From positions 186,001 to 250,000 of the forward strand of contig CDRNVI010000024.1 of the NCBI GenBank assembly GCA_977017575.1: a stretch of 64,000 nucleotides of DNA, given 5' to 3'. Under the pieces are notes generated by a model. That model was given only the letters and a program-made list of their open reading frames with translations. It was not told the origin of the DNA and made no database searches. Positions within the stretch are counted from its first letter, which is position 1; each line of letters starts with the position of its first letter. The stretch comes from Paramoeba atlantica (Eukaryota; Protista; Discosea). Position numbers and translations under genes: made by a program. This document shows, in pieces, positions 1 through 61,680 of this stretch.

Positions 1-252
1 GACGGCGAGAGCGGTGAAGTTCGCGTACCCGTCGCTTTGGAGGTACTCCTTGGGGTGGGCGTTGGCGAGAAGGCGTTTCTCGGCCTCGTGGACGACGTTA
101 AGGAGGTAGGGGCGGCCGTTGGCGTCGCGGTAGGCTCCGATGCCGAGGTCGACTTTGTGGGGGGTGGGGTCCTCGGTGAAACGACGGGCGAGGGCGAAGA
201 TGGCATCGACGGGGATGGTGGGGACGGGGGCTTTGAGGTAGGGGAGAGACAT
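1..252 (-). CDS. GOT1: Aspartate aminotransferase, N-terminal part (runs off the left edge)
   Basis: Hand translation from ATG 252 (absent from the ORF track): MSLPYLKAPVPTIPVDAIFALARRFTEDPTPHKVDLGIGAYRDANGRPYLLNVVHEAE. It matches the AAT N-terminal KVxLGxGAYRD motif. No presequence, so probably cytosolic type. Confidence 0.9.
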   Translation of the reverse strand, partial: MSLPYLKAPVPTIPVDAIFALARRFTEDPTPHKVDLGIGAYRDANGRPYLLNVVHEAEKRLLANAHPKEYLQSDGYANFTALAV

Positions 253-423
253 GGGGGGTTGGGGGTGGTTTGTAGGGGGAAGGAGAGTGATTTTGGAAAG
301 GTAAAGATAAAAGAAGTCGGTGGATGGGAGACTCACGACCTGAATCGTCTTCGGGCAGAAACCCTTTCTTTTCTAAACTTTATAGTTATGAAACAACTTA
401 AATGTGCACACTTCCGCCACTCT

Positions 424-1377
424 TCATATTCCTTGCCTCTTAATCACCTTCAAATCATGAAGTAAATTTTGAACGTTCGGTCTCTGCGTTGGTTCCGGAT
501 GAAGCATCCGAGCAATGACACCGTCTAAAGAGCCATTGCCGGTACTATGAAAGTCTTGAATTTTGGTATTCAGCTTATCACGAAGAGACGTAAGGGAATC
601 AGCCCGGTGCACAAAATAGGGATGCGTTCCATAAAGAGCAATGTAAGTCAATACTCCTAATGCATAAATGTCGGCCTGAGAGTATTCTTCGAGCGATAAG
701 AATGTCTTGCCGAAACCGAGCGCCTGATTCACACGTTCACTACTTAGAAAGAGGGGAGAACCTGAGGCAACATTATCAGATTCACTACAAGGTATCTTGA
801 CCTCTTCGGCCCGATTTTGAGTGTTGTCGACAAAGGCTGAGCCGAAATCAATGAGCTTGACCTCATTAATGGTCTCGTCAAACATAACATTCTCCAGACG
901 TATATCACGATGTGCTATGCCAAGATGGTGAAGATGTAATAGTACCTCTGTTAAGGGACAAAGCACGTAAGTGACGAAAAAGGAAACATTTCGCAGGGGT
1001 GAAGTGGAATCCATGAGGTGACTCAGTAGCGTTTTACCTTCGACCCACTTCATGGAAATGTAGCCATGTGAGTGGGTCCGATAGGCTTCTATGTAGTGCA
1101 CAATTTTTGGATGTGATACTTTGCGCAGCACCGCAACTTCAGTGAGGAACGTTTTCCATTGTAGACACCCTACTGGGGTAATGGAGCCCGCCTTTGGTGG
1201 AGGAAGATCTGATTTTTTAAGGGCACGTAAACCGTCCTTAGACCTCCATAAGGTGGCGAAAGTACCTTCCGCGATCAAAAGTTCCGTTGAGTCCCCACGA
1301 GTACGCATCGGGATACCGCGCAAAAGCTGGGTCATCACCTTTTTACAATCAGTCAATTCGTCATCTTCAAAGCACAT
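424..1377 (-). CDS. Ser/Thr protein kinase
   Basis: 317 aa; ALKK, HRDIRLENV, DFG, DIYALG and RPNV subdomain motifs. Confidence 0.9.
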   Translation of the reverse strand: MCFEDDELTDCKKVMTQLLRGIPMRTRGDSTELLIAEGTFATLWRSKDGLRALKKSDLPPPKAGSITPVGCLQWKTFLTEVAVLRKVSHPKIVHYIEAYRTHSHGYISMKWVEGKTLLSHLMDSTSPLRNVSFFVTYVLCPLTEVLLHLHHLGIAHRDIRLENVMFDETINEVKLIDFGSAFVDNTQNRAEEVKIPCSESDNVASGSPLFLSSERVNQALGFGKTFLSLEEYSQADIYALGVLTYIALYGTHPYFVHRADSLTSLRDKLNTKIQDFHSTGNGSLDGVIARMLHPEPTQRPNVQNLLHDLKVIKRQGI

Positions 1378-2272: not shown

Positions 2273-2459
2273 TGGAATGGAGAGTTGAAAAGGAAGAAGA
2301 TCGTAGATGACAAGCAACTAGTTATAGAATGCTCAAATATCAAAAGAATTTCTTTTTACTATTATAACTGTACCATATAGAATACGTACTACTTTCATGA
2401 TTATGATAATCTTTTAATTGCCTCACAATGTACATGTACGACAGTTCATTGCTGAACAT

Positions 2460-2957: not shown

Positions 2958-3213
2958 GTTTAGAATGATTTGCAGTAAATCAAATTCATAAAGAAAAAGT
3001 ACAAGAAACTTTTCGTGTGCTGTATTGAAGGAGATGAATTGCACACCACAGCAATCTGTATACGTTTTTATACGTCTGTATATGTTTTTATACTTGGTAT
3101 GATGCATAGCATGATTGCTAATGCTCAAAAATTATTTTCCGCTCGTTCTCCAAGTACAAGCTGTGAGAGCTATAGCCACCCACAGAAGTACACCAACAAT
3201 GAGCATAGAATTT

Positions 3214-3279
3214 TCAGCCCCGAAAGGTGTGATCAAAAAAAAATAGAATCATAGGCTTCATTAAAAGATTAATCATCAT
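3214..3279 (-). ncRNA. Box C/D snoRNA, copy 1
   Basis: Minus strand: ATGATGA (C), ATGA (D'), ATGATT (C'), GATCACACCTTTCGGGG, CTGA (D). 66 nt, same strand as the genes. Confidence 0.7.
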
Positions 3280-5990: not shown

Positions 5991-7841
5991 CTATTCTGGC
6001 AGGGAACGAAGTGCAGCTTGAATATCCTCATACTGTTGTCTAAAATGCGCCTCTAGAGTATCCTGCCCCAAGGCTGGGTCTTGGAACTTCATTTCTGTCA
6101 ACTGCACAAGTGTTGAAGGCAGTGTGTTGCGAATCCAGGACCATGTAATCTTCTTCGACGAAGAGTCCGAGAGTAATCGATGGGCCTCTTCATAAAAGCA
6201 CACAATGTTCTTCATCATCCACAATGTTTTGTAGAGCGGGCAAAATTTATCGTAAACTTTAAACGCATCTTGTTGTAAAAACTCTTCTCGAACGAGTTTC
6301 GCCACTTCCAGCACTAGTTTGTCTTGCTCACTTAGCGAGTCCTTCCCGACCAGCTGCACAATTTCGGTCAAGTCCTCCTCACGCTGAAGAATCCGTGCCA
6401 ACGTGGAACGCAGCTGCAAAAACTCTGGATCGATCCGAGAGAAGTAGGGTTCCATCACCTTTAGGTACTTCGAGTAACTCAACAACCAGTTCACGGATGG
6501 AAAATGTTTCCGCTGGGCGAGCTTTTTGTCCAGTCCCCAAAACACTTGCACAATTCCGAGCGTGGCCGTCGTCACGGGATCCGAAAAATCCCCTCCCGGA
6601 GGCGACACCGCTCCCACAATCGTCACACTCCCCTCACGACGCGGCGAACCCAGACACCGTACCTTCCCCGCGCGCTCATAGAAACTCGCCAGACGAGCCC
6701 CCAAATACGCCGGGTATCCCCCATCCGCCGGCATCTCCGCCAACCTCCCCGAAATCTCCCGCAACGCCTCCGCCCACCGGCTCGTGCTATCCGCCATCAT
6801 CGCCAAATCCTTCCCCATATCCCGGTAGTACTCCGCGAGCGTGATCCCGGTATAAATCGACGCCTCCCGCGCCGCCACCGGCATATTCGACGTGTTCGCC
6901 ACCAGCGTCGTCCGTTTCATAATACTCTCCTCCCGGTCCCCCACGGGGGTCGTCAGCGCGGGGAACTCCATCAGCACCTCCGCCATCTCATTCCCCCGCT
7001 CCCCGCACCCCACGTAGACCACCGCGTCGCTGTTGCTGTACTTCGACAGCGCCTGGGAGATCACCGTCTTGCCGCAGCCAAAGGCCCCGGGGATCGCACA
7101 GGTCCCGCCCTGGGCCGCGGGGAAGAACGCGTCCAGCACGCGCTGCCCGGTGAGCAGCGGCATCGAGCCGCTGAGCTTCTCCGCGACGGGCCGGGGGGAG
7201 CGCACGGGCCAGTGCTGGGCTAGGGTCAGCTTTTTGCGCGTGCCACGGGGGGTTTCGAGTTCAAGAATCGTGTCGGTGAGGGTGTAGTCCCCGGGGCACG
7301 CGATCTCGCGGACAACCCCTTCGGTGGAGGGGGGGAGCATAATGTGGTGTTGGGGGATGAGGGAGTTTTCGTAGACGGTGCCGAAGATGTGACCGGGGGA
7401 GAGGGTGTCGCCGGGGCGGACGGCGGGGGTGAATTCCCAGGGCTGGGTGTGGTCCAGGGGGAGGACGTTGACCCCGCGGGGGATGTAGACGGAGTTGGAG
7501 AGGGTTTGGATGGTGTCGAGGGGACGTTGGATGCCGTCAAAGATCTGGCCCATGATCCCGGGACCGAGTTCGAGGCTGAGGGGGGTGCCGGTGCGGTAGA
7601 CAGGGTCCCCGACACGGACCCCGCCGGTCTCTTCGTAGACTTGGATTGTGGCGGTGTCGCCTTGGAGACGGATGATTTCCCCGACGAGTTTGTAGTTTCC
7701 CACACGAACGAGTTCGTACATGGCACTGCCGGACATGTGGACCGCAATAACTACGGGACCGCTGACACCTTGTACCGCGCCCAGCGTGTGCTCCGGGGCA
7801 TCCTCAATAGTGGCGTCCCGGGGTAGGGGTAGGGAGGTCAT
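5991..7841 (-). CDS. ATP6V1A: V-type H+-ATPase catalytic subunit A
   Basis: GAFGCGKT P-loop, [29 protein letters not shown]; 616 aa, no intein. Confidence 0.98.
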
Positions 7842-12056: not shown

Positions 12057-12857
12057 TCAGACAAAAAGTTGAATTTTCTTCGCTTTTCGCTCACGACGAG
12101 ACCCGCCTTGCTTCACCAGGACTACGTTACCCTGCTCATCCTGCACCTCCCGCACGTCAATGTCCTCTATCCCATCCCACGGCGACGCGTCGTCCTGCAA
12201 CTCCATTGGAGTCTCCGGGTGATTTCGATAAAGGTACGCAAACGAGAACTTCCACGGTTCCTCTTCCCACTCATATTTCGCTAACATTTTGTAATGCTCC
12301 GCAATATTTTTCGGAATGTGCTCGTGGATATGGTGATCCACCGGAGGCAAACCGAGCAGTTGGTAATTCTCCACGGTGGCATACACCGCCAGGCGTCGGG
12401 GTGCGAGCTCCATACGCATCACCGACGCCGACACCCACACGGTCTCATGCCTCCTCCCCATAAACCCCCTCGTGGTCGTATCCTTCACATCCCCGAGCAG
12501 GATGACGGGAATATGGACCCGGGGAATACGAAACGGCTCCCCGATCTCCAGCAGCGGTTTGTGCTTCAGGGGGTCGCGAAACGGCTTCGGGAGCCACCGC
12601 GCGTCGTACTCCCCCGCGTTGCACTCACTGTGGGGGTAGTACGACCGGGCCTCGTGCATGCGCTGCTCGTAGGAGGTCAGGGCGTACCGCTTCCAGAGCG
12701 GCACGTGGCTGATCCGGGGGGAGTACCGGACGCTGACCCCCCCGTCGTCGCCGACCTCCGCGGGGACGGGCGGGGGGACGGTGATTTTGTCGTCGCGTTT
12801 GCGTGGGGGGACGTAGTGGGCAATCGCACGCGGGGTGTGGCGTGTGGGGGAGAGCAT
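12057..12857 (-). CDS. MRPL9: Mitochondrial ribosomal protein bL9m
   Basis: IPVILLGDV..G...ETVWV...MRMELAPRRLAVYATVEN matches the L9 N-terminal domain. Confidence 0.75.
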   Translation of the reverse strand: MLSPTRHTPRAIAHYVPPRKRDDKITVPPPVPAEVGDDGGVSVRYSPRISHVPLWKRYALTSYEQRMHEARSYYPHSECNAGEYDARWLPKPFRDPLKHKPLLEIGEPFRIPRVHIPVILLGDVKDTTTRGFMGRRHETVWVSASVMRMELAPRRLAVYATVENYQLLGLPPVDHHIHEHIPKNIAEHYKMLAKYEWEEEPWKFSFAYLYRNHPETPMELQDDASPWDGIEDIDVREVQDEQGNVVLVKQGGSRRERKAKKIQLFV

Positions 12858-12900
12858 GGAGGAAAGGAGGGGGAAGGGGAGGGTAGATAAAACAGGAAAA
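12100..12900. other. C-to-G skew-switch island (pivot about 12600)
   Basis: C runs at 12140-12500, G runs at 12700-12890. Confidence 0.7.
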
Positions 12901-13083
12901 GGACCGGGTTCGTTTTTTGTGCATTTTACATGCGTTTTTCGGATGTTAAATCCTTTTTTTTTGGAAAATAAGAAAGAAGGATGGTGTTGGGTTTACAAAT
13001 GCGATGGAGGAAAAAGTATAAACTTGAACATGTCGGTTTCTCTTTTTGGTACTCCGGGTCGCGTAAAAGGCAGGAAGTATGCC

Positions 13084-24899: not shown

Positions 24900-27161
24900 T
24901 TACTGTATTACAGGCGACTCATCACTCTTTAAGGTGCGGCAAAACGCACATTTGGTAATTTTACGCAGCTCGCCGCTCTCATCTTGGTGGCGCTCAAATT
25001 GGAAATTCATTTTCCGGCACGCCAGACATACCCAGTCCCCAATTTTCCCAGGAAAATCTTTTTTCGAAGGATCCCAGGGAATTACACGACTCTGTGACGA
25101 GCGTGCCGTGTTGCAATAAAAACACCAGTAGCATGCACTCATGTTCAGCTCCCCACACTGAGACGCCGAGCAGTACCACGACCCTGGTCGTGGCTTCAGT
25201 TGGAACACCACCTTCCCCGCACCCAGCAACGGTCTTCTCGGTTTTTCCCCTTCCCCCCTTCCCGTTTCCGCCCTCACGTGCTCACTACACACAAACCGCA
25301 ACCCCTTCTCCTCCTTCAGCCTTGCAATCTCCCTCTCCAGCGCATACCCAAACGGATCCAGCGCCACACTCTCCTCGGAACACCGAAACTCCGCTTTACA
25401 CACAAACACCCCCTCCGCCCCCGGCTCCGCCGCCTCCACCCTCTCCACATACGGTCGGTACCGTACCACATGGTGGCGCGCACACCTCACCCGCACCACT
25501 CCCGATTTCCCCCCACCCCCCCTCACCACCCCCACGCCCTCCCCCTCACGTCGTCCGCTCCCCCCCAACCGTTCGGATCTCACCCCATCCCCTCCTCCTT
25601 CTTCTTCCCCTTCCTCTTCACCCCCCTGTACCTCCGTACCCCCCTCTACCCCTCTCCCCCCCCTACACGGCTTCCACGGCCCACACACCCACAGCCCCTT
25701 CCCCCTCCCCTCCCCCCCCTCCCCCGTCGCGTCCCCCCTCCCCCCCCTCAGCCGCCCCCACACCATGTCACACAGCCGCCGCCGTTCCCGGTGCGTGCTG
25801 CAGTGGACCATGGCGTTGTAGGAGTACGGGGTGCGGGCCTGGAGCTTGTGCTGGGTGAGCCCGCGGCAGGGACGGGCCAGGGTACACGCGTAGAACGGGG
25901 AAGGGGGAGGGGGAGGGGAGGGAGCAGGGGTAGTGGTGGAGGCAGTAGTAGGGGGAGTGGATGGATTGCGAGTAGTAGTGGTGCATGGAGTAGTGGTGGT
26001 AGTAGAGGAAGAAGAGGAAGGGGGTGTAGTAGTGGATGGAGCAGTGGTGGATGGATTACGAGTAGTAGTCGTGGGTGGCGTAGTGGTAGTAGTGGTGGAT
26101 GGAGTAGTCGTGGTAGTGGATGGAGCAGTGGTAGTAGTAGTAGTGGACGGAGCAGTCGCAGTGGATGGAGTAGTCGTAGTAGTGGATGGATTACGAGTAG
26201 TGGTCGTGGATGGCGTAGTGGTAGTAGTCGTGGATGGATTGCGAGTAGTAGTAGTAGTAGTAGTGGATGGATTACGAGTAGTGGTCGTGGATGGCGTAGT
26301 GGTAGTAGTGGTGGATGGATTGCGAGTAGTAGTAGTAGTAGTAGTGGATGGATTACGAGTAGTGGTAGTAGTGGACGGAGTAGTAGTAGTAGTGGTGGAT
26401 GGAGTAGTCGTAGTAGTGGATGGAGCAGTGGTAGTAGTAGTGGATGGAGTAGGGGTAGGAGTAGTACCACTCAAACAGACCAGGAAGGAAGGACCGTCGC
26501 TACGTCCCCAGTTGTGTACGGAGCATTTGTAGGGGAGAGGGGAGGGGGTTGGGGGAGAGGAGAGGGGCGTGGATAGGAACGAGGGGGGTAGGGTTGTGGG
26601 GGTTGAAGGTGGGGTGGGTGGAGGGGTGTGGGGTCCTGGATTCGCTGTTGTGTGAGGTGAGGGGGTACACATATCGGGATGGGCGTCTTGGGAGGTGAGG
26701 AGGGGTTGGGCTTTGGTTGGGGTTGTGGCGTATGCGTTGGGTTGGGTTCGAATACAAGGAGAGGAGGTCTTGCAACGGTAGTGGATCACGTTTACGGTGG
26801 AAGAGGAGCTTGAGCAGAGAGATCGGGAGGAGAGGGCGAGTTTCTCCTCCACTTCCTGGGCGTTGAGTACGCCAGGGATGTCGTACCCGCGAGGACACCA
26901 AATAGTGTCGTGCTGGTCGCTGATGATGTCTTCTAACATGGGTTGCATGGCGTGGATCGGGCGGCTGCGACCGTGGATGCCGCAGGTGACGTACGCGTCG
27001 CTTGAGGGTCGGTTGCGGAGGATGGAGGTTGAGTGCGATGTGTAGCGACACGGGCGAAGGAAAAGGAGATTTGCTGGAACCAAGGCAGTATGGAGCACTC
27101 GTGTAGGAGGCATTATTGGTAGTAGCCGGAAGCATGGGCAAATTGAGGGTACACACTTCAT
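24900..27161 (-). CDS. Protein with four C-x2-H-x3-R..C-x5-C modules, a Thr/Pro tract and two RanBP2-type zinc fingers
   Basis: GSWYCSASQCGELN...C..C and GDWVCLACRKMNF..C..C at the C-terminus; repeated Cys/His modules; presequence-like N-terminus. Confidence 0.75.
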   Translation of the reverse strand: MKCVPSICPCFRLLPIMPPTRVLHTALVPANLLFLRPCRYTSHSTSILRNRPSSDAYVTCGIHGRSRPIHAMQPMLEDIISDQHDTIWCPRGYDIPGVLNAQEVEEKLALSSRSLCSSSSSTVNVIHYRCKTSSPCIRTQPNAYATTPTKAQPLLTSQDAHPDMCTPSPHTTANPGPHTPPPTPPSTPTTLPPSFLSTPLSSPPTPSPLPYKCSVHNWGRSDGPSFLVCLSGTTPTPTPSTTTTTAPSTTTTTPSTTTTTTPSTTTTTRNPSTTTTTTTRNPSTTTTTTPSTTTTRNPSTTTTTTTRNPSTTTTTTPSTTTTRNPSTTTTTPSTATAPSTTTTTTAPSTTTTTPSTTTTTTPPTTTTRNPSTTAPSTTTPPSSSSSTTTTTPCTTTTRNPSTPPTTASTTTPAPSPPPPPSPFYACTLARPCRGLTQHKLQARTPYSYNAMVHCSTHRERRRLCDMVWGRLRGGRGDATGEGGEGRGKGLWVCGPWKPCRGGRGVEGGTEVQGGEEEGEEEGGGDGVRSERLGGSGRREGEGVGVVRGGGGKSGVVRVRCARHHVVRYRPYVERVEAAEPGAEGVFVCKAEFRCSEESVALDPFGYALEREIARLKEEKGLRFVCSEHVRAETGRGEGEKPRRPLLGAGKVVFQLKPRPGSWYCSASQCGELNMSACYWCFYCNTARSSQSRVIPWDPSKKDFPGKIGDWVCLACRKMNFQFERHQDESGELRKITKCAFCRTLKSDESPVIQ
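25190..26720. other. C-to-G skew-switch island (pivot about 25830)
   Basis: Extreme poly-C at 25500-25760, poly-G/GT at 25900-26720. Confidence 0.9.
25925..26470 (-). repeat. Imperfect coding tandem repeat (TTTTTPS / TTTTRNPS / TTTTAPS)
   Basis: + strand gtagtagtagtggatgga(ttacga) units, in frame in the 24900-27161 ORF. Confidence 0.9.
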
Positions 27162-27555: not shown

Positions 27556-29040
27556 TTAAAGTTTAGACAACGATTTCCGTAATCGCGCACGCTCGCGGTC
27601 CAGCCTTTGCAACTCCTGCTGTATAGTTTTCTTCTTCGCGGCGCCGTTCTTTGGGTCGAGATCTACCGTCATCTCCCGCACAGCTCGCCATAGTCCTCCT
27701 CGCAAGTCAACCACTTTCCGTATCGACGTCGCAAGTTTAATAGGCATGGTAATAAAATGATCATACCAAGAAAGAATCAGCGCGTCGGTAATTCCATACA
27801 TACCTTCATGCACGGCGAGCATGGCAAGTTGGGAGCAGAAGGCGGAGTCACTACTGGTCGGGGGACAGGCACGTATAATGTACGAGGGGTCGATGTACTT
27901 TACGGTCGCGATGGTGTACTTCTCCGCGCGTGCCTTCATGTACGCGTTAATCTTTCGCTGCAGCACCTCCCCAATGTCAATCAGCTTTACATTTCCACTA
28001 GCATCCTTTCCTCGCGACGGGGTGTCATGCTGCCAGTGTTGTCCGAACCCTTCAGCGACGACAACCACACAGTGCGGGGACTTGCGGAAGCGCTCCTCCA
28101 GGAGCTTAAAGAACGTTTCTTCGGAGATGGGAGACTCTGGAATCAGACAGATATGCGCCGCAGCACTCGCCAGCACAGCCTGGGCAGCAATAAAACCGCT
28201 GTGACGTCCCATCACTTTTACCAGCCCGACACCGTAGAGGTGACTGCTGGCCTCACTGTACGCACAACGGATCACGTTCACCGCCTGCTCCACAGCCGTC
28301 TCAAACCCAAACGTGCGGTGGCAGAAACTAATATCGTTATCAATCGTTTTCGGAATCCCCACGACAGAGAGATCAAGTCCCCTACGCTTCGCCTCCGCGG
28401 CAATCCGCGAGGCCCCGCGCTGGGTGCCATCCCCTCCAACGGTAAACAAAATATTCACCCCGTAGAACGCCAACGTGTCCACCATCTCCTGTGGACTCTG
28501 CGGTCCGCGGCTGGTACCAAGAAACGACCCGCCCTCACTTTGGATCCGCTGCACCGCGTCATGGGTGAGTTCCATTGCGGTGGATCGCCCCGCCCGGCTA
28601 AGTCCCCAGTACCCAAACCGGAAGCCATAAATCTTACGAATGTTGTAACCCTCGACGGCGCTGTTCACGATGCCTCGGATCACGTCATTTAGCCCAGGAC
28701 ACAGCCCCCCACAGGTGACGACCCCAATCACCGTCTTCTCCGGGTTGAAATGGAGATCCGCTCGAGGCCCGGCCAGGCGCATTTGCCAACGGTGAGCCAC
28801 AGAGACATTGGGCCCCACCAGCGGGTTGGCTAGAATTTTCGAATCCTCCGGGAGAAACAGCCCGTGTCGCATCCAGGACTTCTTGGCGAGTGCGAGGGGG
28901 TTGGGATAGCGAGGGGTGCGGACAGGGAGGCGGGAGACCTCAAAGTCGTTCTGGGAGAGATGTTCGAGACCCATCTCGTGGTCACCGAGGAGTCGGGTGG
29001 GTTGGGTGATGGTGGCAGGGGTGGGCGTGGGAGCGGACAT
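27556..29040 (-). CDS. PFK: ATP-dependent 6-phosphofructokinase, kinetoplastid type, PTS1 (SKL)
   Basis: TCGGLCPGLNDVIR, GGDG (Gly = ATP type within the PPi-family fold), PKTIDND, MGRHSGFIA; ends LSKL*. Confidence 0.96.
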   Translation of the reverse strand: MSAPTPTPATITQPTRLLGDHEMGLEHLSQNDFEVSRLPVRTPRYPNPLALAKKSWMRHGLFLPEDSKILANPLVGPNVSVAHRWQMRLAGPRADLHFNPEKTVIGVVTCGGLCPGLNDVIRGIVNSAVEGYNIRKIYGFRFGYWGLSRAGRSTAMELTHDAVQRIQSEGGSFLGTSRGPQSPQEMVDTLAFYGVNILFTVGGDGTQRGASRIAAEAKRRGLDLSVVGIPKTIDNDISFCHRTFGFETAVEQAVNVIRCAYSEASSHLYGVGLVKVMGRHSGFIAAQAVLASAAAHICLIPESPISEETFFKLLEERFRKSPHCVVVVAEGFGQHWQHDTPSRGKDASGNVKLIDIGEVLQRKINAYMKARAEKYTIATVKYIDPSYIIRACPPTSSDSAFCSQLAMLAVHEGMYGITDALILSWYDHFITMPIKLATSIRKVVDLRGGLWRAVREMTVDLDPKNGAAKKKTIQQELQRLDRERARLRKSLSKL

Positions 29041-29095
29041 GGAGGAATGTGTTGGGGAGGGGAGAAAAGGGAAGGGACGTAGGAAGGAAAGGACC
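28330..29095. other. Weaker C-to-G skew-switch island (PFK 5' end)
   Basis: G-rich 28890-29095, moderately C-rich 28330-28740. Confidence 0.6.
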
Positions 29096-29256
29096 TAGTG
29101 TTGTGTTTTGTTGTACGTGTTTTTTTAGAAGAACGCAGAAAGCAAAATGTTGGTTTACTCTATGATGGTTTCCTAAAGTAATGGAATTATAAAAACATAT
29201 GAAGCGGCTATGATTTTCGTTTAATGGTGTCATGAAAAAAACTGACAACTTTTTCT

Positions 29257-32040
29257 CTACGTTGTAGATTGCGGACGTAGAGGGTGGTTTTGAGGAATCT
29301 CACTTGGGGTCGTATTCACCTCTTCAAAGCCTTCTTGACGAAAAGGCCGTGCCCCAAGCACACGAATAATATCATCGCGAGTGAGAAGTTCGTACGTTAA
29401 AAGGTGTTGCGCAATCTCCTCTGTTTGCTTTTCGTGCTCGCGGACGATCTTCATGGTCTTCTGGAACGCTCGGTCTACCAATTCTTTGGCCTCTGCATCC
29501 AGTTTTTGTGCCGTCTCATCGGAGTATCTCTTGGCCGATATCATATCGTCCTGACCGGGAGGGCGAAGACTGGTAGAGGACAGCCCCGGAACCCGTCCGT
29601 ACAGCCCAACCAGGGCATAGGCGAGACGATACACCTTTGTGAGATCATCCTGAGCACCGGTCGAGAGATGGTTAAAAAACACAAGCTCTGCCACACGGCC
29701 TCCCAAGCACACGCAAAGGTCGTCGTACATCTCTTTTTCCGTCTGCAGGCTGTGCTCCGTGGGGAGATACTGCGCGTAGCCCAGCGCCTTCCCACCTCGC
29801 GGAACAATGGAAACCTTCATCAGGGGATCGGCACGCTCCAGAAACCACCCGACTACGGCGTGACCGGCTTCGTGATGGGCCACCACACGACGTTCAAACG
29901 CGGACAAAACCTGGGCGCGCTTCTCAATTCCAGCCAGGACCCGGTCCGCGGCCTTTTCCAGGCAAATCAGATCGATAAAACACATCGAATGACGCGCAGC
30001 CAGAATCGCGGCCTCGTTACAAACGTTGCGAATATCCGCCCCGGTGAATCCAGGACAAATCTGTGCCATACGCTTGGCAAAGTTTTCCACCACAGACATG
30101 TTATTTTTTATGATCGGACGCAATGATATGTTGGCAGAGACGAGATCAGGATGAGGAGAGAGGGGATCCCTTTTCAGCACGGGGACAGTTACTGGGATTG
30201 GCTCCGTTACCTTTTCGGAATTCTCTGACAGTGCATCCTCTAGACGAGTCGGTTCAAACTTGTGCTCGCGTAATTTCGGCTTGTCATCGCCTTTTTTGGC
30301 TGATCCCGAGTTTGCATCCACAAGAGATTTTTCAGCACGCTCCCTTGTGAGTAATTCCTCTTTCTTGCGTTCCTCTTCTCGAAAAATAAAATCTGGATTA
30401 AGAGGATCCTGGTACGACAAACTCGGGACTAGATTCACCTTTTCCAAATAGTATGTAAAAAGCTCTTCGCGCTCCTTAATTAATGGCTTGTCAATGTTTA
30501 CCATGCGATCAAGACGACCGGGACGTACCAGCGCGGGATCTAGAACACTTACGGGCGCATTGGTGGAGGCGATCGTGATGACGTTAGCCTTGGAGTTGAA
30601 CCCGTCCAAACAGGCAAGGAGTTGGTTTAGGGTGTGCTCTCTTTCCTGTCCTCCCCCACGTAAATCCCCGGTTCGCTTCATTCCGATCGCGTCCACTTCG
30701 TCGATGTACACAATACACGGAGCAAAGCGCTGAGCTTGCTCATAAAGTTTTCGTACGCGGAGTGCACCCATGCCAGCGTAGAGCTCCACGAAATCACTGC
30801 CGCAGCAGGCAATGAATTTAGCCTTGGCTTCACCCGCCATCGCTTTGGCCAGCAACGTCTTGCCCACACCAGGAGGACCGAGTAACAGTGCTCCGTTTGG
30901 AATCTTCGCGCCAAGCGCAAGAAACCGAGAAGGGTTACCTAGAAACTCAACGAATTCGGACACTTCTCTTTTGGCCTCATACATCCCCACCACGTCGCGG
31001 AAACTCATTTGACTCGTAGCGGGCTGAAACTGAATCGAATTTTTAATGTCCATCATCTTATTTCCGGACCGGCTTCCGGAACCCCCGGGCGACATTCCCA
31101 TGGGAGGCATCATCGGGCGCATATAGGAGCTCAGCAGCAAGGGGACATACAGCAGCGGGACCACCCACACCAGTACACCCAGTGCAGTTACCCCCCACTC
31201 CGACCAGGAGGTGTACTTATATTTTGCTGTGATGCTCTCCCCGTGAGATTTCTGAGCCAATGGCAGCATGAATGTGTCAAAGTAACTCACATCGGGGATA
31301 GTGGTGTAGTAGAAAGACACGAACGCTCCTGGCTCGTACCACTGAACATAGGTGTTATACACCGTACAGCGATCGAAACGTAGTGGAGTGCTGTCGTGCT
31401 GGTTTCGCAGTACCTCCTCTAAGGATACGGCGTATCCCTTTGGGAGGCTAAAGTAGTAGAAAATTAAGGACAGAACGGCGAAACGAAGTAGCAGATTTCG
31501 CACCACTCGGTAAATATCATCGTTGTCTTCCTCTGCCTCTGGTTCTTGGGATCTGTTGCTGTTTTTGTCCTGATCAGATTTCCCGGAATTTCCTGGAAGT
31601 TTGGGACCAGAAGTTTTCCGTATATGAATATTTCCAGCCGATTTCCCCAAGTGGCTTTGCGAAATAGAACCGAATACTTTCCATTGTGATCCGGAAAGAC
31701 AGTCAGAAGAAATGTGAGATCTTTTTAGTGCTGTGCTAGTAGGTGAATGTTCGACAGCACATAAAGATGACTCCATGGGAGGATTGTCGCAACTTCGTAA
31801 ATTTGTAGAACCAAGAGCAGAGGATTTTCGTACTTCATTGAAAAGCACCCGAAGATCTGATGAAAAAATATTTCCAATAAGTCCTCTTGCATCCGTGTTC
31901 GATAACAACTTGTTTCTCAACAACGATAATCTCAAGTGTAGTCCCGCTACGTAGCTTCTCATATTAAATGTGCCACGCCTGGTAGGAAGAGCTTTGAAAC
32001 AAAGTCGCACTACTGGAGCTCTTGCGCAATCACCAGTCAT
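29257..32040 (-). CDS. ftsH: Mitochondrial FtsH/AFG3-like (m-AAA) metalloprotease
   Basis: Two TM segments, GPPGVGKT, YIDEVD, RPGRLDR, HEAGH, STGAQDDL. Confidence 0.95.
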   Translation of the reverse strand: MTGDCARAPVVRLCFKALPTRRGTFNMRSYVAGLHLRLSLLRNKLLSNTDARGLIGNIFSSDLRVLFNEVRKSSALGSTNLRSCDNPPMESSLCAVEHSPTSTALKRSHISSDCLSGSQWKVFGSISQSHLGKSAGNIHIRKTSGPKLPGNSGKSDQDKNSNRSQEPEAEEDNDDIYRVVRNLLLRFAVLSLIFYYFSLPKGYAVSLEEVLRNQHDSTPLRFDRCTVYNTYVQWYEPGAFVSFYYTTIPDVSYFDTFMLPLAQKSHGESITAKYKYTSWSEWGVTALGVLVWVVPLLYVPLLLSSYMRPMMPPMGMSPGGSGSRSGNKMMDIKNSIQFQPATSQMSFRDVVGMYEAKREVSEFVEFLGNPSRFLALGAKIPNGALLLGPPGVGKTLLAKAMAGEAKAKFIACCGSDFVELYAGMGALRVRKLYEQAQRFAPCIVYIDEVDAIGMKRTGDLRGGGQEREHTLNQLLACLDGFNSKANVITIASTNAPVSVLDPALVRPGRLDRMVNIDKPLIKEREELFTYYLEKVNLVPSLSYQDPLNPDFIFREEERKKEELLTRERAEKSLVDANSGSAKKGDDKPKLREHKFEPTRLEDALSENSEKVTEPIPVTVPVLKRDPLSPHPDLVSANISLRPIIKNNMSVVENFAKRMAQICPGFTGADIRNVCNEAAILAARHSMCFIDLICLEKAADRVLAGIEKRAQVLSAFERRVVAHHEAGHAVVGWFLERADPLMKVSIVPRGGKALGYAQYLPTEHSLQTEKEMYDDLCVCLGGRVAELVFFNHLSTGAQDDLTKVYRLAYALVGLYGRVPGLSSTSLRPPGQDDMISAKRYSDETAQKLDAEAKELVDRAFQKTMKIVREHEKQTEEIAQHLLTYELLTRDDIIRVLGARPFRQEGFEEVNTTPSEIPQNHPLRPQSTT

Positions 32041-40139: not shown

Positions 40140-42608
40140 TTAACGGCGAGACGCCCTGTCTACCTTCCGGTAGTGATCGAGTTTGTACCAGTACTGTGCA
40201 TGTCCCTTTGTAAGGCGTCGCAGTCGCGCTGAATACTGAGTCAAATTTCGCATCGCCACAATCGCCTCCACGGTGTCCCCGTTCTCTTGCTCAAGAACGG
40301 AAACGGCACCCATCTGTGTGAGATCCTTCATGACGTCCCCGAGGTAGCCAATGTCGGCTAAAAGCACTTCTAGAAGCATGTAGGGTTCAACAAGAATCAT
40401 CTCACGTTTACGTAAGAGCGTAGAGACGAAGCGACCCACGGCGGTCTCGATTTCACCGGGTGACACGCTTGCTGTGGTCAGAGGGATCACCCTGGTGAAT
40501 GTGAGCCGCGCCCCCACCAACTCGACATGGAGTCGCGGGCTATTGGCCAGAGCGTGCCGCGCCGCACGCGTGAGCGACGGCAGCACCGCCTGCAGCTGCG
40601 CCAGCCCTCTCTCCACCGCCTTCGTGGCCTCAAACCGATCCATTTGCCTCATCTTCTCCCGCACCATCGCCTCCCGGTCAATCTCAATCTCAATCTCACA
40701 CGCCCTCGCCTCAATCTCCCCCTCCCTCCCCTCCCTCCTCCTCGGCTCCAACCGCGCCCCCAGCTCCACCACCCCCTGCCCCCTCTCCGCCTCCACCACC
40801 ACCTCCCCCCCCACCTCCACCCCCTCCCCCGGGCTCTCCCGCAGCTCCACCCTCGCGGGCAGCGCCCGACACCCCACCCCGAACCCCCGCCGCACCCGCG
40901 CCAGCCCCACCTCCACGTGCAGCTCCCCCATCCCCTGCAGCACCACCTCCCCCGCCGCGGTCTCGTTCACCCGCAGACTCGGGTCCTCGCGGCACAGCAC
41001 GCGCAGGGCGTGCAGCAGCCGCGGGACCTCCCCGGCGTCCGCGGGCTCCACCGCGACCCCCACCACGGGGGCCGGGACCGCGACCCCGGGGAGGGTGAAC
41101 GGGTCGTGTTGGGCGAACGGGGCCGAGACCCAGGTGTCGCCGGTGTGGGCGGTGGTGGAGTAGGCGGCCCCGAGGGCGCCGGGGGGGATGGCGCCCACGG
41201 GGGTGAGCGCGTCGGCGTGGATGCGGAAGACCCGGGGGAGGGTCTCGGGGGCGTGCCGTGTGGTGTTGTGGTAGGGGGTGCGGGGGCGGAGGGTGCCGGT
41301 GTAGACCCGGAAGAGGGCGAGGAGGGGGGAGGGGGTGCGGGGGGAGGGGGTCCCGGGGGAGGGGGTCCCGGGGGAGGGGGTCCGGTAAATGACTTTGAAG
41401 ACGAGGGCGACGGTGGGGGGGGGACGAGAGGGGGGTGGGGGTGTAGGGGGGAGGGGGGAGAGGGTAAGGGATTTGCCGTGGGAGGTGAGGACGGTGAGGG
41501 GGGGTTTGTCGAGGGGACTGGGGAGGTAGTGGACAATGGCGTCGAGGAGGGGTTGGATACCTTGATCGCGGCGAGCGGCGCCGACGAGGAGGGGGAGGTA
41601 TTGGGGGAGGGAGGGGTCTTTGGGGAGGTTTTGGCATTGTGCTCGGATGGCCTTGATAATGGGTTCCACGGGGAAGGAAAGTTTACAATCTTCCTCGGAC
41701 TGTGAGGAGGTCTCAATGTAGGCGAGAAATTCCTCAAGTAGCGTGGAATCGCGTTGAAGCAACTCATTCAGCAAAGCGGATCGCCCCGCCTTGGCGCGTT
41801 GCTGCACCTCGTCCCCTTCTTTCCAGATCGATTCTTTCTGCATGACAGTGCCTCGAGGATCCTTCCACCGTATGGTCTGTAATTCTAAGAAATCAATAAC
41901 CCCCTCAAACCCCGCGTAGCCATCGCTGAGAGGACACTGCAATGGCGCGGGACACACCGCAAGCTTTTTCTCAATACTCGAAACGGCTTTAATAAAGTCC
42001 GAATTCGGCTTGTCCATTTTGTTAATAAACGCAACCACGGGTATCCCATATTTCCGTGCCTGTCGTAACACCGTGTGGCTTTGTCCCTGCACCCCGACGG
42101 CGCCATCAAAGACTGCTACAACCCCATCGAGAACGCGAAGGCTGCGCTCTACCTCCACCGTAAAGTCCACGTGTCCCGGGGTATCGATGACATTGATTGT
42201 GTGGTCTTTCCAGGGGAGAGTAACCGCCGCAGCGGTGATCGTAATCCCTCGCTCCGCCTCCTCCTCGAGGTAATCTGTCGTGGTACTTCCCTTGTCCACC
42301 TCACCGATGCGCTGTTGCACGCCGGAGTAGTATAACATGCGCTCCGTGGCGGTCGTCTTCCCTGCATCGATGTGCGCTACAACCCCAATGTTGCGGACAC
42401 GACGAATATCATACGCGGGTGACTTTGTAGACTTTTGTAGCAGTGGAGCGCGGGTAGTGCTGAATCGACGCCTGCTGAACGGCCAAGCCGTGAGAAAGTG
42501 ACGTGCGCGAAATGTTGTGGAGATGTGAGAGGTGCGTATTCCCGTGTGCAGAAAGAAATCAAGATATTCCTTAGGACTTGTATGAACTCGAGTACATGCC
42601 TGCCGCAT
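40140..42608 (-). CDS. GFM2: Mitochondrial EF-G2 (ribosome-recycling GTPase)
   Basis: AHIDAGKTT, EEEAERGITI, DTPGHVDF, NKMD, EDPSLRV..GMGELH.EV, LVEPYM; long presequence. Confidence 0.88.
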   Translation of the reverse strand: MRQACTRVHTSPKEYLDFFLHTGIRTSHISTTFRARHFLTAWPFSRRRFSTTRAPLLQKSTKSPAYDIRRVRNIGVVAHIDAGKTTATERMLYYSGVQQRIGEVDKGSTTTDYLEEEAERGITITAAAVTLPWKDHTINVIDTPGHVDFTVEVERSLRVLDGVVAVFDGAVGVQGQSHTVLRQARKYGIPVVAFINKMDKPNSDFIKAVSSIEKKLAVCPAPLQCPLSDGYAGFEGVIDFLELQTIRWKDPRGTVMQKESIWKEGDEVQQRAKAGRSALLNELLQRDSTLLEEFLAYIETSSQSEEDCKLSFPVEPIIKAIRAQCQNLPKDPSLPQYLPLLVGAARRDQGIQPLLDAIVHYLPSPLDKPPLTVLTSHGKSLTLSPLPPTPPPPSRPPPTVALVFKVIYRTPSPGTPSPGTPSPRTPSPLLALFRVYTGTLRPRTPYHNTTRHAPETLPRVFRIHADALTPVGAIPPGALGAAYSTTAHTGDTWVSAPFAQHDPFTLPGVAVPAPVVGVAVEPADAGEVPRLLHALRVLCREDPSLRVNETAAGEVVLQGMGELHVEVGLARVRRGFGVGCRALPARVELRESPGEGVEVGGEVVVEAERGQGVVELGARLEPRRREGREGEIEARACEIEIEIDREAMVREKMRQMDRFEATKAVERGLAQLQAVLPSLTRAARHALANSPRLHVELVGARLTFTRVIPLTTASVSPGEIETAVGRFVSTLLRKREMILVEPYMLLEVLLADIGYLGDVMKDLTQMGAVSVLEQENGDTVEAIVAMRNLTQYSARLRRLTKGHAQYWYKLDHYRKVDRASRR
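40540..41640. other. C-to-G skew-switch island (pivot about 41080)
   Basis: Poly-C at 40700-40940, poly-G at 41260-41620. Confidence 0.9.
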
Positions 42609-52074: not shown

Positions 52075-52960
52075 CATCTTCCCTTTATACGTCACACCCT
52101 TTCCCACACCTTCTTTTTCCCTCCCCTCTTCCCCCTCTTTTTCTTCCCCTCTTTCTTACCACCTCCCGGACTCCCGTTGTGACCGGTTCTCCACCCTCCC
52201 ACACAGGTGCTCCCGCCTGCACACGTACCCCTCCCCCTCCCCCTCCCCCCTGCGTTCCATCATGTCACGCGCCCGGAGCTTGTGGTGCACCGCGCACACC
52301 ACACGGTCCGTGACCCGACACGTGGAACCGGCGGTACACGTCCAGGACTGGGACGACCCGTCCTGGACCATGTACCGTGCATTGCGCCATATCCCGTGAA
52401 GGGAACATTTAACTTTAAGATTCACATATTGACTATTATTATTATTACTATTACTATTAATCGTTATATTCGTGTTGGCGACTCGCCTCCCTCGGTCCAT
52501 CGTTTTGGTATAGGAGGAGAGGGTGGTGCAGTCGTCGTAGGGGACGCAGACGAGTTCCTTTGTGGTGTCGTCCACACGGAGACAGGAGATGTAGCGACGA
52601 CGACCGTGTGTGGAACACACCGCGAATTGGGAGGAGCTGGTGGGAGGGGAAGATTGGGCTTCTGTTGTTGCTGTTGTTGTTGTTTTGGCTTCTAGGTTAG
52701 ATTCTTTGGTTATGGGGAGCTCATTCTTTTCTATTGAATTTTCATGATGCATTTTTGAACTTTCGTTTGCGTTGGACGTGTGACAGTAGCGAAAAGCGTG
52801 ATGGTGAAAAGGTGGGGGTAGAAACGAGAGGGGAATGGGGGAAAAACGTGAAAAAGGGGTTGAGGGTGAGCGAGAAAGCGTTGAATGGAAGGGGTTGGTA
52901 TTCTTATGGGGGAGGAAGGGGTTGGAAGGTGGAGTATGCGTGTTGCATGTTACCCTGAGG
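52075..52960. other. C-to-G skew-switch island with AT-rich centre (52400-52470)
   Basis: C/T-rich left arm includes non-coding DNA; G/A-rich right arm. Confidence 0.85.
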
Positions 52961-52992
52961 AGACGTGTGATGTTCTTGAACGGAGAAAACAT
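52156..52992 (-). CDS. Presequence-bearing protein with three C-x2-H-x3-R..C-x5-C modules
   Basis: CSTHGRRR..LVCVPYDDC; CSLHGIWR..WTCTAGSTC; CAVHHKLR..YVCRREHLC. Confidence 0.75.
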   Translation of the reverse strand: MFSPFKNITRLLRVTCNTHTPPSNPFLPHKNTNPFHSTLSRSPSTPFSRFSPIPLSFLPPPFHHHAFRYCHTSNANESSKMHHENSIEKNELPITKESNLEAKTTTTATTEAQSSPPTSSSQFAVCSTHGRRRYISCLRVDDTTKELVCVPYDDCTTLSSYTKTMDRGRRVANTNITINSNSNNNNSQYVNLKVKCSLHGIWRNARYMVQDGSSQSWTCTAGSTCRVTDRVVCAVHHKLRARDMMERRGEGEGEGYVCRREHLCGRVENRSQRESGRW

Positions 52993-53210
52993 TCGTCTTT
53001 GTCGGTGGAATTAAAAATAGGGCAATAGAAAACCGCGAAGTTGTAAAGAAATAGGCGTACAGGTAGTTTATCAAATGGATAAATAATCCAACAAATGTAA
53101 GAAAATTTGAGCTTCTATTGACATTATACTATAATGTCAAAAAGTGAGACTCCTATAATGATTATAGGAGTCAAGGAATGTTTAGAAAAAATATTTAAGA
53201 GAAGAAAATT

Positions 53211-60456: not shown

Positions 60457-60759
60457 AGAGCTCGGAATCTATTAGGAGATGGATTGAAGAATGATCCTGA
60501 TACAAAAATCAAGAGAGGGTGAGTAGGGATTGATTCAATGTACATAGTCAATACAATGTACATAAAGATTCGTATCTTATACTCAATGCACACACTTAGA
60601 AGTCTGCCCACCCAACGAGAGGTTCCTTCTAGGTAGGACTCGCCTAGCTAGCAAGGTAGCTAGTCACCACATGATGATTACAGCGGTTCGTGCCGTTTTC
60701 CTCCACAAATGTAGACGACATGCCGCAGTTTAATCTTTTTTCCTATCACCGTTTCCCCC

Positions 60760-61680
60760 ATCGTCGTCCCCTTATTCAGATCTCCTCATTCCCCATTTTC
60801 ACTTTTTTGCAACACCGTTTCCTGTTTTTCGCGGGTCCCGTTCTCTTCCTTCCCCCCCACTGGGGCGGGCTTTCGTCGTAACCTACGACTTCGTTTCTCC
60901 AGCTCCCGGGCATCCGCGGCCTCTCGTTCCTCCGCGGTAGGCACCACTCGTGCGTTGTGTGTAACCGTGGCGACCTCTCCGAAATCCGCCCTTTTCTGTT
61001 GCTGTCGTCGCTCTACTGCACTCTCCACGGTAGTCAGTTTCGCCTCCCGACTTTGCCGTATCGAGGCGTCTTGTATGGGTTCAGGAAACCACGGGTAGGC
61101 GAGATAAACCACCGAACAAGATTGTAATTGTGGTGAATGGACCACCCTTTCGTCTCTATCCCGTAGCCCCGAACGACTCCCGACTTCACCCTCCATCGCC
61201 ATGGCAAGCAGTTTGTTTTTCACCAATCCATTCTCCACAGTGCGTAGACGCCAGCGCATGGTAACTTGAGGCTCGAGCTTTTCCTTTTGATTTTCTATAT
61301 TTCTATTGTTTATTTGTTTCGTTTTTGAATCTAATGTTTTTGAATCTAATGTTTTAATATTTACTTGTGTGTTGTATTCAGCGATGGGATGCGAATCGTT
61401 GAGAAGTTCAAGGGTAGGGGGGGACCGGGAGGGGAAGGAGAGACGCAGGGGAGGGGAGGGATGGGGTGGAGGTCCGTCGTCGTCCATAAAGGCCACCAGA
61501 GCGTTGGGGTTGTGTAGGAAAAGGAGAGGGGAGGGAGAGGCCATGAGAGGGGGGAAGGGGAGACGAAGAATACAGGAAAGGAAGGAGGATAAAATGGAGA
61601 GAAAGGGTGTGAGAGGGCGTGGAAGATTGAGAGAAGAAGAGAGGAGAGATGAGGGAACTTGGGGATAAAAAAGGAAGTGT
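60760..61680. other. C-to-G skew-switch island with AT-rich centre (61280-61380)
   Basis: C/T-rich left arm; G/A-rich right arm extends past the ATG into the intergenic region. Confidence 0.8.
60786..61544 (-). CDS. Hypothetical protein
   Basis: 252-aa ATG ORF on the gene strand; low-complexity ends, charged C-terminal helix. Confidence 0.55.
   Translation of the reverse strand: MASPSPLLFLHNPNALVAFMDDDGPPPHPSPPLRLSFPSRSPPTLELLNDSHPIAEYNTQVNIKTLDSKTLDSKTKQINNRNIENQKEKLEPQVTMRWRLRTVENGLVKNKLLAMAMEGEVGSRSGLRDRDERVVHSPQLQSCSVVYLAYPWFPEPIQDASIRQSREAKLTTVESAVERRQQQKRADFGEVATVTHNARVVPTAEEREAADARELEKRSRRLRRKPAPVGGKEENGTREKQETVLQKSENGE

Follow-up and report, generated by a model that had tools for sequence, protein, structure and literature searches.

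In this Perkinsela-related protist, roughly one in five genes (kinetoplastid genes) carries a patch of ~1.1 kb in which almost all positions free to vary are C on the + strand up to a central pivot and G beyond it, the trace of a mutation process that acted on one strand and ran outward from a fixed centre. The window, by which we mean the whole 64-kb stretch of DNA that was analysed, contains seven complete islands of this kind, with pivots at ~7.11, 12.6, 25.79, 28.8, 41.07, 52.5 and 61.25 kb, and a right arm alone at its start (Table 1). The islands are confirmed as a real feature of the sequence. They are mutational footprints, neither selected sequence nor an artefact, and within them one strand is pushed to G, chiefly by A>G and C>G but also through loss of T.

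Islands of switching skew and their host genes

An 800-bp left/right skew-switch scan gave C-to-G peaks at 7110, 12760, 25790, 28820, 41090, 52500 and 61280. The polarity is uniform (seven to none in the window): the scan revealed no independent island of the opposite, G-to-C polarity, and its strong G-to-C peaks were only the outer edges of the same islands. Third codon positions showed significant C-to-G flips in seven genes (within-gene permutation, p 0.003-0.013) and significant G-to-C flips only at the island edges at 25145 and 41663. All eight features lie where an earlier note on this DNA had located them. That note had also called the islands periodic, which does not hold: the spacings between pivots are 5.5, 13.2, 3.0, 12.2, 11.4 and 8.8 kb (density ~1 per 9 kb), and with a CV of 0.45 there is no period. 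The length of 0.8-1.5 kb given there proved too variable, since the islands consist of two arms of ~550 bp (about 480-650 bp), equal in weak and strong islands; the exception is one arm expanded by a 560-bp tandem array. Weak islands lie at 8.43, 21.88 and 31.27 kb. The note's description of AT-rich centres in two islands (52.38-52.47 and 61.26-61.39 kb) agrees with what we found. Of the G4 motifs, 10 of the 11 in right arms are on the + strand and all 8 in left arms are on the - strand.

Table 1. Arms of the skew islands in the window (positions on the + strand)
Feature	Position	Remarks
Right (G-rich) arm, pivot beyond the window start	1..330	Extreme segment 157-330: GC 0.60, skew +0.73
Island 1, left arm (+ strand C-rich)	6530..7110	3' half of the V-ATPase A island; sense-strand third positions mostly G
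Island 1, right arm (+ strand G-rich)	7111..7680	Mixed C/G pivot zone about 7000-7250, GC3 0.95
Island 2, left arm	12150..12600	Mitochondrial-type L9 gene; weaker
Island 2, right arm	12601..13016	Reaches 159 bp beyond the ATG into the 5' UTR; ends 68 bp short of the upstream gene's stop codon
Island 3, left arm	25136..25789	CHCC zinc-module gene; GC 0.66, skew -0.62
Island 3, right arm	25790..27149	Skew +0.59; made longer by the 560-bp tandem array at 25900-26466
Island 4, left arm	28208..28741	Phosphofructokinase (PFK) gene; weak, skew -0.24, yet full width
Island 4, right arm	28742..29295	First 300 nt of the PFK CDS and the 5' UTR
Island 5, left arm	40584..41066	EF-G gene; GC 0.73, skew -0.52; sense codons ending in G 39/40
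Island 5, right arm	41067..41681	EF-G; GC 0.71, skew +0.56; Pro-rich insertion of 17-19 residues vs the Perkinsela orthologue
Island 6, left arm	52035..52501	Gene g278 and 121 bp of its 3' UTR; AT-rich centre 52380-52470
Island 6, right arm	52502..53066	Extends to 74 bp beyond the ATG
Island 7, left arm	60693..61238	Gene g252 and 93 bp of its 3' UTR
Island 7, right arm	61239..61790	AT-rich centre 61260-61390; stops 73 bp short of the stop codon of the upstream gene

GC within the islands is 0.6-0.8, and the skews of the arms range from -0.24 to -0.62 on the left and from +0.27 to +0.59 on the right, with values reaching 0.6-0.8 within arms and +/-1.0 at third positions. Skew is lowest beside the pivot, highest 200-500 bp outward and back to about 0 within 500-650 bp on either side. 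GC peaks at the island centre; the five centres that are not AT-rich have 62-78% GC, and CpG o/e at the pivots is 0.57-1.09, that is, CpG is not depleted. The outer edges are sharp, and in EF-G skew is highest toward the outer ends. Tandem-repeat expansion is concentrated within the arms. No motif is shared across the pivots, at which recurring 7-mers merely reflect composition.

As the earlier note had stated, every gene of the window lies on the - strand, in one unidirectional array, and the islands cross CDS/UTR boundaries: the skew extends into the 3' UTR of g278 (C 51, G 6) and the 5' UTR of g252 (G 91, C 18). All seven pivots lie inside CDSs, and the + strand ORFs found in the islands are by-products of their GC richness. 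Each of the seven islands is contained in a single gene (P = 0.06 under random placement), no arm intrudes more than 38 bp into a neighbouring CDS, and in three small genes the island covers about the whole mRNA. Six of the seven begin no more than 260 bp from the ATG of the host gene; the sole exception is the EF-G island, with its gene-5' edge 951 bp from the ATG. The statistic for this anchoring is post hoc, with p about 0.002 unconditionally and about 0.02 by a hand estimate, given pivots within those genes.

The proteins are affected as well. Amino acids are rewritten within the islands, and in EF-G the two arms encode first a Pro/Thr/Leu-rich and then a Glu/Arg/Val/Gly-rich stretch, with third positions saturated (GC3 0.97; 33 of 40 C, then 39 of 40 G). 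Two opposite codon preferences thus occur inside one gene, which together with the changes in UTRs and amino acids argues against selection on codon usage. The islands disrupt neither reading frames nor Pfam domains, and words of the EF-G stretch are present in four listed runs from three samples, none of them an RNA run; the unbroken frames and domains and the presence of the stretch in these runs argue against an assembly artefact.

In 130 kb from three genomes of the Perkinsela lineage, among them the orthologues of V-ATPase A, PFK and EF-G, no such islands are present. On this comparison the islands are lineage-specific. In all three genomes a divergent strand switch has V-ATPase A as its first gene. 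The idea that island genes mark ancestral array starts is not supported, since PFK is first in only one of the three and no island occurs here in DCP1, the gene that is first there. A full-text literature search found no description of islands of this type.

One strand is pushed to G

At fourfold-degenerate sites, the G-rich strand of both arms has G at 0.64-0.69, C at 0.11-0.15, A at 0.08-0.13 and T at 0.07-0.12, against a background of about 0.24 each. At transition-only sites A>G is driven on this strand (0.76-0.77 vs 0.43-0.47, p 1e-17 to 1e-19). GC-biased gene conversion predicts enrichment of C at C/T sites in the G arm and of G at A/G sites in the C arm, but neither was found: the C fraction at the former is 0.47 vs 0.43 (p 0.3), so that T>C is not driven, and the G fraction at the latter is 0.32 vs 0.47 (p 0.009). 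With A>G and C>G driven on the G-rich strand and T>C not, one strand is pushed to G, and the force behind the islands is not GC-biased gene conversion, which is a new result; the transition-only codon test rules out its plain form in the arms.

The one-strand pattern of C>G and A>G (overall N>G) is read from composition, and in these terms both changes are confined to one strand, as they would be with C-inserting translesion synthesis of the Rev1 type. Protein identity to the nearest relatives is only 63-75%; silent sites are therefore saturated, and the direction of change could be polarised at only a few constrained V-ATPase sites. On the C-rich strand these sites changed mostly by G>C and A>C, the substitutions by which conserved V-ATPase residues in the C arm were mainly altered. 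No Rev1 or UNG gene lies within the 64-kb window.

G accumulates and C is lost on the strand whose 5'->3' direction leads away from the pivot, which bears out and sharpens the polarity argument of the earlier note. Under divergent transcription this strand would be the non-template one, at an origin bubble it would be the lagging template, and in break repair it would be the nascent strand. A resected overhang would not fit: at human meiotic hotspots the resected 3' overhang is inferred to be the strand that loses C and A (PMC7615360), whereas the C-losing strand here is 5'-ended relative to the pivot, so the observed polarity is opposite, as had been argued, to that expected of resected DSB ends.

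With regard to sequence context, an APOBEC-type TC preference was rejected, as the C that remains on the G-rich strand shows no depletion of TC (o/e 0.97-1.10). Residual C on that strand is depleted in the GC context (0.70-0.81) and enriched in CC in both arms, with CpG o/e about 1.

Candidate mechanisms

As the most likely, though tentative, explanation, to which we give somewhat less than even chances, we propose that the islands are caused by recurrent outward opening of the duplex through divergent, R-loop-prone transcription, with lesions fixed as G by translesion synthesis. What the sequence shows is that, around a fixed centre, the outward 5'->3' strand has been driven to G over ~550 bp on each side, and its partner has therefore turned C-rich; where the two zones overlap at the pivot, each free site is G or C. 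The opening, repeated outward from the centre, would be a miniature of trypanosomatid bidirectional Pol II start regions. Lesions (deaminated C, lost purines) would arise on the strand that is displaced and not transcribed; a C-inserting translesion polymerase of the Rev1 type would copy them and in this way fix them as G. PMC7615360 terms C>G a telltale of REV1 and describes A>G as a product of translesion synthesis on single-stranded DNA. In kinetoplastids a G/T-rich coding strand by itself promotes Pol II initiation, and R-loops and G4s are favoured by a G-rich non-template strand, so that the process would feed on itself, resulting in saturation and an all-or-little pattern. The cause is mutational rather than selective because of the GC3 of 0.97, the skew of UTRs, the residue changes in V-ATPase and the composition of the EF-G arms.

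Several observations stand against divergent transcription. Antisense initiation every 9 kb in a unidirectional array would collide with polycistronic transcription, and the asymmetry ends after 550 bp on the sense side though transcription goes on. Two centres are AT-rich and the pivots have no common motif; the anchoring of six of the seven islands within 260 bp of the ATG is left without an explanation. A bolder and rather unlikely version is that a self-reinforcing mutational runaway makes bidirectional initiation zones de novo inside genes. A seeded 1.1-kb, CpG-island-like element would then grow to saturation and overwrite the host protein, and a promoter-like element would be produced by mutation bias instead of selection.

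It is doubtful, on balance, that the pivots are fixed replication initiation sites, at which lagging templates are transiently single-stranded near the origin and lesions are fixed as G. A minus-to-plus switch of GC skew is classic at origins (bacterial origins, human skew jumps), and all seven pivots show it. The lagging templates would be the + strand rightward and the - strand leftward, which is the geometry observed, and the islands share with skew-switch origins both the change at one point and the association with G4. They are about as dense as the "thousands of lower efficiency initiation events" reported in Leishmania (PMC12890776), where, however, initiation sites are AT-rich. Mapped kinetoplastid origins are intergenic, with an AT-rich or poly(dA)/poly(dT) centre flanked by G4s, those upstream on the + strand and those downstream on the - strand (PMC13179062, PMC12890776), whereas the seven pivots lie in CDSs, five of them with GC-rich centres, and the strand order of G4 is reversed. 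Origin skews span replicons, and replication should leave an asymmetry along the entire replicated arms; here it ends at about 550 bp. The tie to gene 5' ends is not predicted by origins. The earlier note's proposal of fixed origins or initiation sites is thus partly supported: the strand geometry, which suits either an origin bubble or divergent transcription, stands, periodicity does not, and origins do not predict the anchoring at the ATG.

Recurrent DSB (recombination) hotspots at the pivots would have to act through the newly made, displaced strand of SDSA or BIR and not through a resected overhang. A break at the pivot remains a candidate because the displaced nascent strand of synthesis-dependent repair has the observed polarity, although we regard it as unlikely to be the cause. 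The weak skew at the pivot with its maximum 200-500 bp out, an arm length of the order of resection or conversion tracts and the clustering of tandem-repeat expansion in arms would all fit. To our knowledge, no polymerase signature converts every base of a nascent strand into G, and since there is no symmetric AT>GC drive at transition-only sites, GC-biased conversion is not the main force. Spo11, DMC1 and HOP1 are kept in Perkinsela (PMC5601477). Human hotspots have a similar anatomy (Hinch et al. 2023, PMC7615360): the centre is symmetric, the flanks mirror each other in a strong asymmetry that peaks away from the centre, and the C>G (REV1) and A>G classes are ascribed to translesion synthesis. 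The mutated strand inferred there is the resected 3' overhang, which gives the opposite polarity (this follows from the resection geometry in the text and its attribution of the mutations to ssDNA damage). Human hotspots are, moreover, footprints of mutation rate, whereas the islands are saturated composition.

It is improbable that a linear DNA of ~1.1 kb, such as a cDNA of the 5' part of an mRNA, underwent resection from either end and entered the gene by recombination again and again. Such two-ended resection would expose exactly the two G-gaining strands, and the start of six islands near the ATG, the near-complete coverage of three small mRNAs, the sharp outer edges and the EF-G skew peaks toward the outer ends are consistent with it. 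The EF-G island is internal, however, nothing sets a fixed 3' end at 1.1 kb, saturation would require hundreds of conversion rounds at the same genes, and the anchoring statistic is post hoc.

Ordinary islands of GC-biased gene conversion, selection on codon usage or mRNA structure, or an assembly artefact are very improbable and already largely refuted by the evidence above, despite the GC maximum at the centre and the conserved proteins rewritten in gerbils (PMC6573468, PMC7403616); as to structure, the arms are complementary no further than their composition (inverted 8-mers common to both arms within about 2 SD of within-arm shuffles, which excludes a palindrome or hairpin), and the sense RNA, with an MFE of -472, is no stabler than within-arm shuffles (-485), so an RNA hairpin was rejected too.

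Implications and related systems

If the islands are fixed sites of two-way DNA opening, they would provide a map of initiation zones, one per ~9 kb, that can be read from sequence, in a group in which both promoters and origins are notoriously hard to pin down. Irrespective of the machinery behind it, the N>G signature on one strand records strand-specific mutation in an unusually pure natural form, and the process is powerful enough to prevail over selection on V-ATPase, PFK and EF-G. This bears on the shaping of proteins by mutation bias, the rise of CpG-island-like elements and compositional artefacts in kinetoplastid phylogeny.

Mammalian promoter GC skews are modest, whereas arm skew in these intragenic islands reaches 0.6-0.8, with third positions reaching +/-1.0. 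The islands resemble mammalian CpG-island promoters with R-loop GC skew in being ~1 kb long, GC-rich and not CpG-depleted; according to Ginno et al. (2013, PMC3787257), skew at such promoters is positive along transcription, so that a bidirectional one flips from minus to plus. The polarity and size of the arms also match the divergent Pol II start regions of trypanosomatids. Those of T. brucei have G/T-rich 10-mers on the coding strand (Wedel et al. 2017, PMC5579346), the top strand being C/A-rich and then G/T-rich, and synthetic GT-rich elements of 210-416 bp suffice there for directional Pol II initiation and H2A.Z deposition (PMC5579346). In the islands the coding strand of each outward direction is likewise G/T-rich (+ strand on the right, - strand on the left). 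Trypanosomatid start regions, in contrast, lie between divergent gene arrays, have several kb of H2A.Z chromatin and show neither GC3 saturation nor overwriting of CDSs, whereas the islands sit inside CDSs of a single array. With the runaway GC islands of the gerbil Pdx1 region (PMC6573468, PMC7403616) they share a local, non-adaptive force and a GC high enough to replace conserved amino acids; GC-biased gene conversion, the gerbil force, is strand-symmetric, whereas that behind the islands acts on one strand and shows no symmetric AT>GC drive in the transition-only test.

Skew-switch islands and their anatomy

The window has a GC content of 46%, and its credible genes (34 ATG-ORFs, 73% of the window) all lie on the - strand, in agreement with the one-strand layout described in an earlier note. 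In a 500-bp composition profile and a 200-bp scan, each GC-rich patch (0.6-0.8 GC) had a + strand rich in C to the left and in G to the right. We scored this polarity with a switch statistic, obtained by subtracting the skew of the left 400 bp from that of the right 400 bp. Its maxima gave seven pivots, and strong negative peaks occurred only at these islands' outer edges. The C-to-G flip was also present in the seven host genes at third codon positions alone (within-gene permutation p 0.003-0.013). When we looked for the opposite polarity in the window, the only significant G-to-C third-position flips were island edges, which leaves a tally of 7 to 0, plus a half island. The C-to-G islands of the earlier note were thus recovered by both approaches, but not the periodicity it had claimed for them, as their spacing ranges from 3.0 to 13.2 kb (CV 0.45). 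Three weaker C-to-G flips may be faint islands, nascent or decaying.

Positions of islands and other features in the window
Feature	Position	Description
Island pivot	7110	Host: V-ATPase subunit A
Island pivot	12760	Host: mitochondrial-type ribosomal L9
Island pivot	25790	Host: CHCC zinc-module protein
Island pivot	28820	Host: ATP-phosphofructokinase (PFK)
Island pivot	41090	Host: EF-G paralogue
Island pivot	52500	Host: small unassigned ORF (g278)
Island pivot	61280	Host: small unassigned ORF (g252)
Half island	1-330	
Weaker third-position flips	8432, 21878, 31269	p 0.03-0.08; 370-770 bp downstream of three further genes' ATGs
Tandem array	25900-26466	Right arm of CHCC island; units of 18, 27 and 81 bp; nearly only G, A and T on + strand; protein Ser/Thr/Pro-rich
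G4 tandem	45245-45286	Perfect 13-bp x 3.2 (G6TCTAGGG type), intergenic; sole + strand G4 motif outside islands; adjoins 10-bp A/T repeat
Tandem repeat	61878-62263	207-bp unit x 1.9, 82% identity, within 659-aa gene 61863-63842
Partial synteny	1589-7841	With Perkinsela-lineage genomes: V-ATPase A, 404-aa gene, 215-aa gene, TRAM/LAG1
Partial synteny	27556-35589	With Perkinsela-lineage genomes: DCP1, L22, FtsH-like, PFK
+ strand ORF	44218-44841	207 aa; only sizeable one outside islands; overlaps 135-aa - strand ORF; no Pfam match
Topoisomerase III	35977-38676	Toprim, Topoisom_bac, TOP3B zinc ribbon

Change-point delimitation gave left arms of 581, 654, 534, 483, 467 and 546 bp (the left arm of the L9 island is ill-defined) and right arms of 495, 522, 554, 615, 565 and 552 bp; one further right arm, which holds the 560-bp tandem array, measures 1360 bp. 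The weak PFK and g252 islands equal the strong EF-G island in width. This speaks for a box-like zone, intrinsically about 550 bp long, in which the process acts, and against simple decay away from one point. The island-averaged skew was weakest beside the pivot (-0.21 and +0.22) and reached its maximum 200-500 bp out (-0.43 and +0.64), with the GC maximum around the centre. Of the canonical G4 motifs, 10 of the 11 in right arms were on the + strand and all 8 in left arms were on the - strand, and tandem repeats were concentrated in the arms (24 of the 34 TRF rows for the whole window). No motif common to the seven pivots was found. A palindrome or hairpin was rejected: the arms show no complementarity beyond that due to composition, and the RNA does not exceed shuffled sequences in stability.

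Strand-specific gain of G in the arms

The cause of the islands is mutational, not selective. In EF-G (GC3 0.97), 33 of 40 codons ending in C are followed by 39 of 40 ending in G, and in V-ATPase A (GC3 0.85-0.95) the third-position skew passes from -0.8 to +0.7. First and second codon positions go along, with skews up to -0.9 and +0.8; the EF-G arms encode a stretch rich in Pro, Leu, Thr and Ala and then one rich in Glu, Arg, Val and Gly. The arm that is C-rich on the sense strand carries a 17-19-residue insertion in EF-G relative to the Perkinsela orthologue, and in V-ATPase A its changes at otherwise-conserved columns are mainly G>C and A>C. The skew extends to non-coding parts (g278 3' UTR, C 51 / G 6; 5' UTRs, G 50-91 / C 12-18), so the islands do cross CDS/UTR boundaries, as had been noted. 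An assembly chimera is very unlikely, because Pfam domains are unbroken across the islands and the words of the EF-G stretch are present in four runs, which come from three samples of a single study.

Scores were computed separately for 4-fold sites and for each of the two classes of 2-fold site, with the CHCC repeat excluded. On the G-rich strand, which is sense in one arm and antisense in the other, 4-fold sites of both arms had G at 0.64-0.69, C at 0.11-0.15, A at 0.08-0.13 and T at 0.07-0.12; the background is about 0.24 per base. At transition-only sites, A>G on this strand was strongly driven (G or C fraction 0.76-0.77 versus 0.43-0.47, p 1e-17 to 1e-19). T>C on this strand was not driven in one arm (0.47 versus 0.43, p 0.3) and was shifted the wrong way in the other (0.32 versus 0.47, p 0.009). 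GC-biased gene conversion would raise both transition classes, so the main force in the arms is a different one. What is seen is a change of every base to G on one strand, mostly through C>G transversions and A>G transitions, and two such zones overlapping at the pivot by themselves give about 100% GC3 with mixed C and G.

The strand that gains G and loses C is + to the right of the pivot and - to the left, running 5' to 3' away from the centre. In ssDNA mutagenesis, the exposed strand loses C. Three kinds of strand have this geometry. In divergent transcription or R-loops it is the non-template strands; in an origin bubble, the templates of the lagging strands; and in synthesis-dependent repair or BIR starting at a central break, the strands that are newly made and displaced. 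In Hinch et al. 2023 (PMC7615360), C>G is "a telltale signature of REV1", A>G is listed as a TLS outcome, and both are ascribed to ssDNA damage at meiotic hotspots in humans. The exposed strand inferred there is the 3' overhang left by resection (to the left of the break, the forward strand), whereas the islands have the opposite polarity; by this comparison, the earlier note was right that they run contrary to resected DSB ends.

Candidate mechanisms and gene 5' ends

New contributions to this question are a strand-specific test for N>G change, the finding that arm length is uniform, the strand geometry set against published hotspot and origin topologies, and the statistics of 5' anchoring. 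We tentatively regard divergent transcription, with R-loops, as a possible source of the islands and the likeliest of the three. Pol II start regions of T. brucei have G/T-rich 10-mers concentrated on the coding strand, and synthetic GT-rich elements of 210-416 bp are enough for directional initiation and H2A.Z deposition (PMC5579346). The island arms match these elements in polarity and size. If GT-rich arms acted as initiation elements, the resulting positive feedback could account for saturation. Against this, the islands lie inside the coding sequence of a unidirectional array, and antisense transcription is only hypothetical. A replication origin bubble at the pivots would fit the polarity and density of the islands but is unlikely, as the asymmetry ends after 550 bp and Leishmania initiation sites are AT-rich (PMC12890776). 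Nascent strands displaced during repair from a central break are likewise a doubtful source: the three-zone anatomy is strikingly similar to the human hotspot footprint, and Perkinsela retains Spo11, DMC1 and HOP1 (PMC5601477), but the mutated strand would have to be the nascent one and not the overhang.

Relative to the host ATG, the right (gene-5') edge lies at -236, +159, -12, +255, +74 and +246 bp in six islands (positive where the arm passes the ATG into the 5' UTR) and at -951 bp in the EF-G island. Finding at least six of seven edges within 260 bp of an ATG has P ~0.002 under random placement and, given pivots inside those genes, P ~0.02 by hand estimate, both post hoc. In L9, PFK, g252 and V-ATPase A, but not in control genes, the sense strand has a C-rich tract that begins 50-140 nt upstream of the ATG. 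Arms intrude at most 38 bp into the CDS of the upstream neighbour; single-gene containment alone has P = 0.06. A symmetric, two-sided process one arm-length downstream of gene starts is predicted by none of the three mechanisms. The right strands would also result from a linear intermediate that is anchored to the transcript and resected at both its ends, but this is contrived, does not fit EF-G and is quite improbable.

Host genes and relatives

Neighbours of the island genes include RPN2, topoisomerase III, FtsH-like AAA/M41, TYW1-like radical SAM, LRR and kinase genes. The closest protein matches are in Prokinetoplastina, with no closer relative in the searched collections: V-ATPase A shares 75% identity with metagenomic proteins, 74% with isolate PhM-4 and 70-73% with three Perkinsela-lineage genomes, and for PFK the identity with these three genomes is 63-66%. 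Six loci of these three genomes (130 kb), partly syntenic with the window, contained no 300-bp windows with absolute skew > 0.4, versus 24 of 425 here. The GC3 flip was absent at these loci from the orthologues of V-ATPase A, PFK and EF-G (the last taken from the PFK locus). On this comparison, the islands are lineage-specific.

Divergent strand switches lie upstream of V-ATPase A and of DCP1 in the Perkinsela-lineage genomes, whereas the window stays single-strand there; arrays were therefore fused or split between the lineages. The topoisomerase III gene lies within the same gene array, and type IA topoisomerases act on R-loop-prone DNA.
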